From the NCBI GenBank assembly GCA_022605425.2, contig CM061253.1:1-64000 (forward strand): a stretch of DNA of 64,000 bases, read 5' to 3'. The translations under genes were made by a program, and so were the position numbers. A model generated the notes under the pieces. It was not told the DNA's origin. It ran no database searches and saw nothing but the letters and a program-made list of their open reading frames with translations. Origin of the DNA: Hamiltosporidium tvaerminnensis FI-OER-3-3 (lineage: Eukaryota; Fungi; Microsporidia). How positions within the stretch are numbered: position 1 is the first letter of the stretch; each line of letters starts with the position of its first letter. This document shows, piece after piece, positions 1-1,851 of the stretch.

Positions 1-711
1 CCTAACCCTAACCCTAACCCTAACCCTAACCCTAACCCTAACCCTAACCCTAACCCTAACCCTAACCCTAACCCTAACCCTAACCCTAACCCTAACCCTA
101 ACCCTAACCCTAACCCTAACCCTAACCCTAACCCTAACCCTATACCCTAACCCTAACCCTAACCCTAACCCTAACCCTAACCCTAACCCTAACCCTAACC
201 CTAACCCTAACCCTAACCCTAACCCTAACCCTAACCCTAACCCTAACCCTAACCCTAACCCTAACCCTAACCCTAACCCTAACCCTAACCCTAACCCTAA
301 CCCTAACCCTAACCCTAACCCTAACCCTAACCCTAACCCTAACCCTAACCCTAACCCTAACCCTAACCCTAACCCTAACCCTAACCCTAACCCTAACCCT
401 AACCCTAACCCTAACCCTAACCCTAACCCTAACCCTAACCCTAACCCTAACCCTAACCCTAACCCTAACCCTAACCCTAACCCTAACCCTAACCCTAACC
501 CTAACCCTAACCCTAACCCTAACCCTAACCCTAACCCTAACCCTAACCCTAACCCTAACCCTAACCCTAACCCTAACCCTAACCCTAACCCTAACCCTAA
601 CCCTAACCCTAACCCTAACCCTAACCCTAACCCTAACCCTAACCCTAACCCTAACCCTAACCCTAACCCTAACCCTAACCCTAACCCTAACCCTAACCCT
701 AACCCTAACCC
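1..711. repeat. Telomeric (CCCTAA)n / (TTAGGG)n tract, left chromosome end
   Basis: Hexamer array from base 1 to ~711, perfect except one 1-nt insertion (ccc-tata-ccc at 141-144). Confidence 0.99.
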
Positions 712-1851
712 TCCGGTTTTTTTAAGTTCAAGCGAGTAACTGAGTAAATCATATCCTTTGATTTTTTGCATTACATCAAAAGGGCTTAAGTTAAAATAAG
801 TATAATACTCAAATTTTACAAGCCTGTCACGATTCTTATAAATTTCTTTGAAGTCTTCATTTTTTTTAAATTCAAAGCGATAAAATATTGAGTTTTTATT
901 CTGAAGATCAGATAGAATGCCAGGCTCCATTAAATCAGAATCAGTTGAATTGTCGTGTTTATTGATCTTGCTACCTAGTTCTTCTCGTATAATTGAACTT
1001 AGTTCGTTTTGTAGGCCAATAATGACCTTGTTTGCCATTTTTAAAATAAATTTTTCAATAGCTTTATCTCGATCTTGTGCGCTAATATCATTATATGGCT
1101 GTTCTGAATTTTGTGCTTTTAAAAAATCAATCCCCGTATCATGTTTTCCTTGTGCATGATCATCTTGTAATGGCCCATTATTTTCGTCTAAGTTCGAAAT
1201 AATTTCTTCATTGGGTTCCGAATCTTGGTTTACTACGTCGTTGCTGTGTTCTTGTGCATTATTAAAACAAGAAATTTTATTTTCAAAAAAATAATTGTGA
1301 GAATTCTCTCTTGCTAAATTTTCTGATCCTGTATAGATATCAAGGCCAGGAAATTGCGATTCTGATACGCTTTGTGTCATACATTTAGTTTTAATTGATT
1401 CTGCTGATTCGTAATCATGAAACTTTTTAGGGAAAGCCGTTCGGAATGGCGGTAATTTCGTCTTAGGAAAACTTTGAACATTTTTTATCGCCTGATCACT
1501 GATACTAACTACTTCAGAAGCTTTAACACCGGGGTTGCTTTCTGTATTCTTCGGGAATAGATAATTTATCTGAAAGAAAGTGTTTTGAGAACTTAATGTT
1601 AAATTTTCTTCCCCGTTTTGCTCTAAATTATCATCGATTGAATCTTCTAGTTCTTTTCTTTTGTTTGAACGTCTAAATTCATTATATTCTTCAAAACCAC
1701 AATCTCTTGCACTCTCGACTGTACTTTTTCTTTCCGAATGTTCTGCTCCAATATGTTCTACGCGCTCATGCTTTGCTTTTTTTCGAGGTAGAGATGCCTC
1801 GACATTACTAAAACAAATATTTATGATATGAATCAAAAAAAATATATTCAT
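712..1851 (-). CDS. Putative secreted protein (signal peptide + basic NLS-like motif), 380 codons, 3'-truncated by and in frame with the telomere
   Basis: Hand translation from ATG at 1851: MNIFFLIHIINICFSNVEASLPRKKAKHERVEH...YDLLSYSLELKKTG, then GGG TTA repeats. No stop before the window start, which explains its absence from the ORF track. 380 open codons in very AT-rich DNA is unlikely by chance. Confidence 0.85.

Follow-up and report, generated by a model that had tools for sequence, protein, structure and literature searches.

The left end of contig C8 in the long-read assembly of the microsporidian Hamiltosporidium tvaerminnensis FI-OER-3-3 is a telomere that sits directly on a truncated protein-coding gene, while an older draft of the same isolate carries this gene intact. 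We consider it likely that the chromosome lost its tip very recently and that telomerase healed the terminal deletion, which would be fixed or heterozygous. The break would have fallen inside a 665-codon gene of a mostly end-proximal family; telomerase would have used the exposed ...CCGGA end as its primer for the synthesis of TTAGGG repeats, leaving the promoter and codons 1–380 fused in frame to the telomere. Two histories could account for the coexistence of both forms in the sequence record. The deletion may have appeared in the laboratory line and become widespread there after the first sequencing project and before the second, or it may be present on only some chromosome copies of the parasite, which is diploid (PMC6944219), so that each assembly records one form. 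A simple 50:50 heterozygote is awkward, since a string-graph assembler normally follows the longer haplotype.

The window, i.e. the whole analysed stretch of 64,000 nucleotides, is the left end of C8, a contig with telomeres at both ends. The coordinates of the relevant features are collected in Table 1.

Table 1. Features of the window, counterparts of the locus in other assemblies and related elements elsewhere in the genome. Positions refer to the window unless a contig is named.
Feature	Position	Strand	Basis or remark
Telomere tract, (CCCTAA)n on + strand	1..711		Tandem Repeats Finder
Junction base, A on gene strand	712..712	-	common to ancestral gene and repeat phase
Truncated gene, codons 1-380 of 665-codon gene	712..1851	-	no own stop; translation, orthologue
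Hydrophobic N-terminal leader, residues 1-19	1795..1851	-	translation
Upstream region, presumed promoter	1852..3100		unchanged vs intact allele
Fcf1/Utp23-like gene (PF04900), synteny anchor	5944..6474	+	Pfam
Arrays, period about 30-37 bp	16863-17408, 18281-19401		flank Sar1-like gene 17522-18193
Arrays, period about 30-37 bp	52680-53488, 54432-55078
Two paralogous ORFs, about 865 aa	26643-29255, 36575-39169	-	leucine-rich-repeat-like C-terminal halves, no Pfam match
H. magnivora BE-OM-2	7122-712 (6415 bp)		98.3% identity over this span (98.8% to window in the four-draft comparison); gene intact, 665 codons, continues past break
H. tvaerminnensis IL-G-3			99.3% identity to window; gene intact, 665 codons
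H. magnivora IL-BN-2 (PIXR01000823.1)			about 99% identity; contig stops 33 bases past break, no telomere
FI-OER-3-3 2019 Illumina draft (PITJ01000442.1)	712-5611 and 5653-6735		100.000% identity; gene intact, 665 codons
Reverse-transcriptase ORF, C1 left end	1068-3281 of end piece		starts 222 bp from telomere, reads away
Reverse-transcriptase ORF, C9 left end	1188-3932 of end piece		starts 520 bp from telomere, reads away
665-aa/561-aa family neighbour pairs	C1:1940061/1947919, C15:1362570/1370415, C12:2637978/2650968, C14:1368059/1377276
Further 665-aa/561-aa family pairs	C13:1478060/1487108, C4:85683/78588, C12:17834/13816

The junction and its intact counterparts

Tandem Repeats Finder describes window 1–712 as one array of period 6 with 118.5 copies and 99% matches, in which the sole variant unit is CCCTATA at 138–144, the product of a one-base insertion. 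The G-rich strand runs 3' outwards, as expected for a left chromosome end, and the length of the tract lies inside the 138–1697 bp range of the other 22 canonical ends. Translated on the minus strand, window 1–1851 gives 617 codons with zero stops: 380 gene codons (...ELKKTG), then 94 GL pairs, one GY and 23 RV pairs, the GY falling at the inserted base and separating the GL frame before it from the RV frame after it.

The preliminary description of this DNA had reported an ORF of 380 codons (1851–712) joined in frame to the telomere without a stop, followed by a GL repeat that becomes RV after the single-nucleotide insertion, and our translation confirms both observations. Its caveat that two of the three telomere frames are open is equally correct (on the G strand GL and RV are open and the third frame is closed), so the missing stop within the repeats means little in itself. 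What counts is the 380-codon stretch upstream of the repeats and not the stop-free repeats: the open frame into the telomere extends for 383 codons here, and for at most 70 at any other of the 23 canonical telomeric ends. That this is no chance open frame is settled by its homology to a longer protein of H. magnivora, described below. The description had also stated that there is no subtelomere, which is accurate insofar as the gene meets the telomere without an intervening repeat block. The next few kilobases, however, have duplicates elsewhere in the genome and contain multigene families.

The telomere repeats abut the gene DNA directly, in the polarity of a chromosome end and without filler. 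The ancestral gene at this point reads ...CCGGA then ATTCAT, and the telomere phase is A then GGGTTAGGG. In its longer context the ancestral sequence, taken from H. magnivora, is ...AAAAAAACCGGA then ATTCATCTT, and that of the window is ...AAAAAAACCGGA then GGGTTAGGG. The broken end thus has a single base in common with the repeat phase, the final A, and the alignments with orthologues stop exactly at window 712. An EcoRI site (GAATTC) and a CCGG site straddle the break within CCGGAATTC (window 708–718, gene strand); we considered whether the EcoRI site is meaningful and regard it as a coincidence noticed after the fact.

A protein search with a paralogue identified the true orthologue, H. magnivora CWI36_0061p0030 of 665 aa, which is 96% identical to the ORF over residues 1–379 without gaps and possesses 286 further residues. 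The corresponding loci of four short-read drafts were fetched through an exact-protein anchor, the Fcf1-like gene, and the draft accessions were assigned to strains, PITJ being FI-OER-3-3 (PMC6944219). The 2019 draft of FI-OER-3-3 shows zero differences from the window in 5,983 aligned bases and contains at least 5.2 kb more DNA past the junction, and both FI-OER-3-3 projects concern one isolate, collected in 2005. This lack of any difference between the truncated and the intact copy suggests that the event was very recent. A chimeric origin of PITJ01000442.1 from the locus and its C1 paralogue was considered and rejected: its distal 4.77 kb is colinear with IL-G-3 at 99.3% identity, and shows 88.6% identity to C1. 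The contig of H. magnivora IL-BN-2 ends close to the breakpoint, which may reflect chance, a branch in the assembly graph or a fragile spot. Exact-protein look-ups, Logan contigs included, returned NCBI contigs only.

The distal DNA and the other chromosome ends

Where is the DNA that used to lie beyond the break? We compared the distal DNA of the 2019 draft, that of H. magnivora and the neighbouring 561-aa gene with the 21.6-Mb long-read assembly, scoring the best 40 candidates per query, and found paralogues only, with no copy of the distal DNA itself. These paralogues reach 89–92% identity on C1 and at most 72% elsewhere, and the 561-aa gene has at most 38% protein identity; for one further distal query the best 40 candidates were saturated by a high-copy transposon. 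The distal segment thus appears to have been deleted and not translocated. The loss would come to at least 5.2 kb; synteny with H. magnivora, whose contig runs about 20 kb past the break without reaching an end, puts it at about 20 kb.

The FI-OER-3-3 assembly comprises 17 contigs and 21.64 Mb, with (TTAGGG)n telomeres and eleven contigs that have two of them (PMC10542269). Our survey of the 34 contig ends yields the same tally as published once two (CCTGG)n ends are counted as telomeres. The right ends of C4 and C5 read (CCTGG)n / (CCTAG)n and not CCCTAA, which looks like the known nanopore base-calling error on telomere repeats. The genome encodes TERT: an open frame of 911 aa on C4 matches Telomerase_RBD with 72 bits.

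Telomere-adjacent sequence differs from end to end, and no conserved telomere-associated repeat block was seen at any end examined. When the first 1.2 kb inside each telomere was compared with other contig-end and internal sequences, at least seven other ends (2L, 3R, 6R, 10L, 1R, 2R and 16R) displayed the same signature as the left end of C8. At those seven ends homology begins at the first base after the telomere, and the partner, 89–100% identical, runs on into ordinary DNA; the partner sites lie 0.5–2.4 kb inside another contig end or, for 16R, at an internal site. The repeat-phase overlaps at the eight junctions are 1, 2, 1, 0, 1, 3, 4 and 0 bases (0–4 at the seven other ends). Telomeres on truncated shared blocks are therefore common in this genome, and what sets the left end of C8 apart is that a long open gene chanced to lie at the cut. 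An exact-protein look-up of the gene adjoining the 16R telomere found no record.

Retroelements and recent duplications are also encountered at the ends. Two ends have APE-RT retroelement ORFs beside the telomere, and one of these reverse-transcriptase ORFs, at C1 left or C9 left, also has an endonuclease domain. At C10 left, the 902 bp next to the telomere recur with 100% identity, in inverted orientation, some 2.4 kb in from the right end of C10. Either one end was copied very recently to the other and then truncated, or the assembly duplicated the block.

A less favourable reading is that the assembly displays a rare healed molecule or a chimeric read, and that most cells keep the intact gene and the distal DNA, which were dropped in assembly. 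The intact 2019 draft of the same isolate, identical up to the junction, is compatible with it, as are the PacBio read N50 of only 1.54 kb and the assembly procedure, in which contigs were extended from seeds in silico with Consed, merged with quickmerge and curated by hand (PMC10542269). A rare or chimeric molecule accords poorly with the correct telomere polarity and the clean one-base overlap without filler, with a 712-bp tract that is typical of the assembly, with seven other ends showing the same kind of junction, and with the absence of the distal 5 kb, among the best candidates scored, from the whole assembly, where it is not placed on another contig; that the junction survived two rounds of Illumina polishing is a weak argument in the same direction. 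The regular junction, the normal tract length, the similar ends and the missing distal DNA together favour a real event, and we hold the rare-molecule reading to be possible but rather unlikely.

The preliminary description had proposed de novo telomere addition inside a gene, leaving the choice between accidental healing and programmed fragmentation, and had recommended searching for an intact allele or paralogue and inspecting the remaining chromosome ends. The first part of this proposal is supported by three assemblies that are colinear through the break, by the missing distal DNA and by the one-base overlap; the intact gene exists in BE-OM-2, IL-G-3 and the 2019 FI-OER-3-3 draft, paralogues are present in the genome, and the other ends supply the further examples described above. 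Programmed or site-specific fragmentation with telomere addition, as in ciliates and some nematodes, has not fared equally well. Several ends of the genome are healed truncations and the IL-BN-2 contig stops 33 bases past the site, as such a process might produce, but that contig has no telomere and simply ends, and the site is uninterrupted in FI-OER-3-3 (2019), IL-G-3 and BE-OM-2. Judged by eye, the eight junction contexts have no evident motif in common, and the healed points occupy different positions in shared blocks, as expected of accidents. We find a programmed origin hardly credible.

The truncated gene and its family

The gene begins with an ATG at 1851–1849 on the minus strand, and the remnant represents the first 57% of the 665-aa gene. 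Its hydrophobic leader is followed by a basic PRKKAK-type motif, and both leader and motif are present in two full-length paralogues; judging from the sequence, the leader may be a signal peptide and the basic motif may serve nuclear targeting. A six-frame genome search with the 379-aa ORF gave eleven other matches, seven of them within 100 kb of a contig end. The full-length paralogues, of 666 and 683 aa, align from the first residue and extend 275–294 residues past the end of the ORF. The closest copy, on C1, has 89.8% DNA identity over window 714–3100, including the upstream region; it is a pseudogene with three in-frame stops, and its homology to the window goes precisely as far as the point where the telomere begins.

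A profile search of 1.84 billion protein representatives retrieved only 13 family members, of which the named ones all belong to Hamiltosporidium, and the family would, as far as could be told, be restricted to this genus. Pfam has no domain in the ORF, the intact protein or the paralogues, and the protein atlas provided no usable match for the family. The AlphaFold2 model of the 665-aa protein, with a mean pLDDT of 36, is irregular in its first half and helical in its second, at poor confidence.

In three strains the intact orthologue has kept its reading frame, and its pN/pS is 0.37–0.66, which points to a working gene under weak constraint before the break. Between the remnant and the C1 pseudogene dN/dS is 0.73, and amino-acid changes polarised with the next paralogue split 13 versus 23, which does not tell constraint from drift. 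The remnant is indistinguishable from neutrally evolving sequence, as would be expected if the break is recent. The aligned family has 49 invariant columns, and 40 of them belong to the deleted portion beyond residue 380. Deprived of most of the conserved part of the protein, the remnant is most likely a fresh pseudogene, and we infer that it has lost its function.

It could be supposed instead that the fusion is expressed and matters, in the form of an mRNA that continues into UUAGGG and yields a GL/RV-tailed protein or a TERRA-like RNA. Promoter and 5' region are the same as in the intact allele, and no stop interrupts the frame anywhere in the telomere tract. The last A[A/U]UAAA hexamer, the poly(A) signal of the species, stands at window 900, and none follows from there to the junction or in the repeats, which makes read-through RNA possible; any transcript running into the repeats would be a non-stop RNA. 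Other observations speak against such a role: the ORF contains four A[A/U]UAAA hexamers at which transcripts could terminate prematurely, the annotated proteins returned for the assembly include its paralogues but not the ORF itself, and the invariant positions are concentrated in the lost part. Cells normally degrade non-stop mRNAs together with the proteins made from them, and genes beside telomeres are frequently silent, both of which count against expression. A search with window 713–3100, on the gene side of the junction, located this sequence in 20 runs from 8 studies, and no RNA run is among those on record. An expressed fusion of any consequence strikes us as quite improbable, and a fresh pseudogene left by the healed deletion remains the preferred reading of the remnant.

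The 665-aa family and the unrelated 561-aa family recur as neighbours 4–13 kb apart, mostly near contig ends, and the arrangement looks like a duplicated two-gene cassette. The pair of paralogous ORFs of about 865 aa constitutes another expanded family of the C8 end region.

Several other elements populate the window. A repeat of about 700 bp at 6710–7436 and 7890–8666 occurs in more than 40 copies over all contigs at 74–84% identity and saturates DNA searches; it is probably a high-copy element. The arrays with a period of about 30–37 bp have TAACACCC as their core where they precede genes and GGGTGTTA where they follow them, and are not telomere repeats, and their unit is also found within the coding repeats of the ORF at 53673–55220. 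A run of 248 A bases at 14055–14302, probably a LINE tail, adjoins a retroelement fragment at 14497–16015 that also matches C1 at 79–80%. The small-subunit rRNA genes, 1303 nt long, match the microsporidian model end to end with 1208 bits.

Known systems and implications

The closest precedent is the healing of chromosome ends in Plasmodium falciparum. Strain 3D7 has 28 ends, of which 5 are healed breaks; four of these interrupt var genes, and cultures have yielded examples with both the earlier and the later state on record (Calhoun et al. 2017, PMC5550746). Both organisms are parasites with AT-rich genomes and multigene families near their chromosome ends. H. tvaerminnensis differs in being a diploid microsporidian fungus with TTAGGG repeats, in that the affected family is uncharacterised and restricted to Hamiltosporidium, and in that its case is drawn from the comparison of assemblies. 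Since none of its ends examined has a conserved telomere-associated block, the absence of such a block is no hallmark of healing here, unlike in P. falciparum.

At human neotelomeres, the junctions show little or no overlap with the repeat. Human neotelomeres share with the present case the TTAGGG unit and the stabilisation of a terminal deletion by a new telomere (PMC3136441, PMC4427916), but are pathological and confined to single individuals, whereas in H. tvaerminnensis at least eight ends of one genome are concerned. DNA elimination in ciliates and nematodes likewise proceeds through breaks and direct telomere addition, sometimes in or beside genes (PMC11347171, PMC13060919). Those breaks are programmed, reproducible and in some instances guided by motifs, in contrast to the H. 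tvaerminnensis site, which is intact in other strains and has no motif recognisable by eye. Within the same phylum, chromosome ends of the Encephalitozoon type, also built of telomerase-type simple repeats, present a succession of telomere, telomere-associated repeats, rRNA genes and subtelomere. The ends of H. tvaerminnensis, unlike these, have no rRNA genes or fixed repeat block, and their telomeres may adjoin a LINE element, cap a shared block at a point that varies from end to end, or interrupt a gene.

A literature search, covering the searchable library, found no report pairing microsporidia with telomere healing. On the preferred reading, the left end of C8 adds a new group to a known mechanism, textbook telomere healing, and the intact and healed forms make an unusually clean pair. 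It also carries a caution for the use of finished assemblies, because this chromosome, although described as ‘telomere-to-telomere’, is missing 5 kb or more of DNA, with one intact gene or more, that an older draft contains.

The availability of before and after forms from one isolate offers a handle on the pace of chromosome-end change in microsporidia. A further-reaching view, which we mention as speculation and consider doubtful, is that chromosome ends turn over on a laboratory time-scale, healed breaks spreading or persisting in the heterozygous state within a single clonal host line and pruning the end-proximal families, with an expressed non-stop gene–telomere RNA left behind in the present case. 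The presence of the signature at eight or more ends explains why the species is without a fixed subtelomeric block, and suggests that its gene families near the ends, whose products may be secreted, are moulded by erosion of the chromosome termini.
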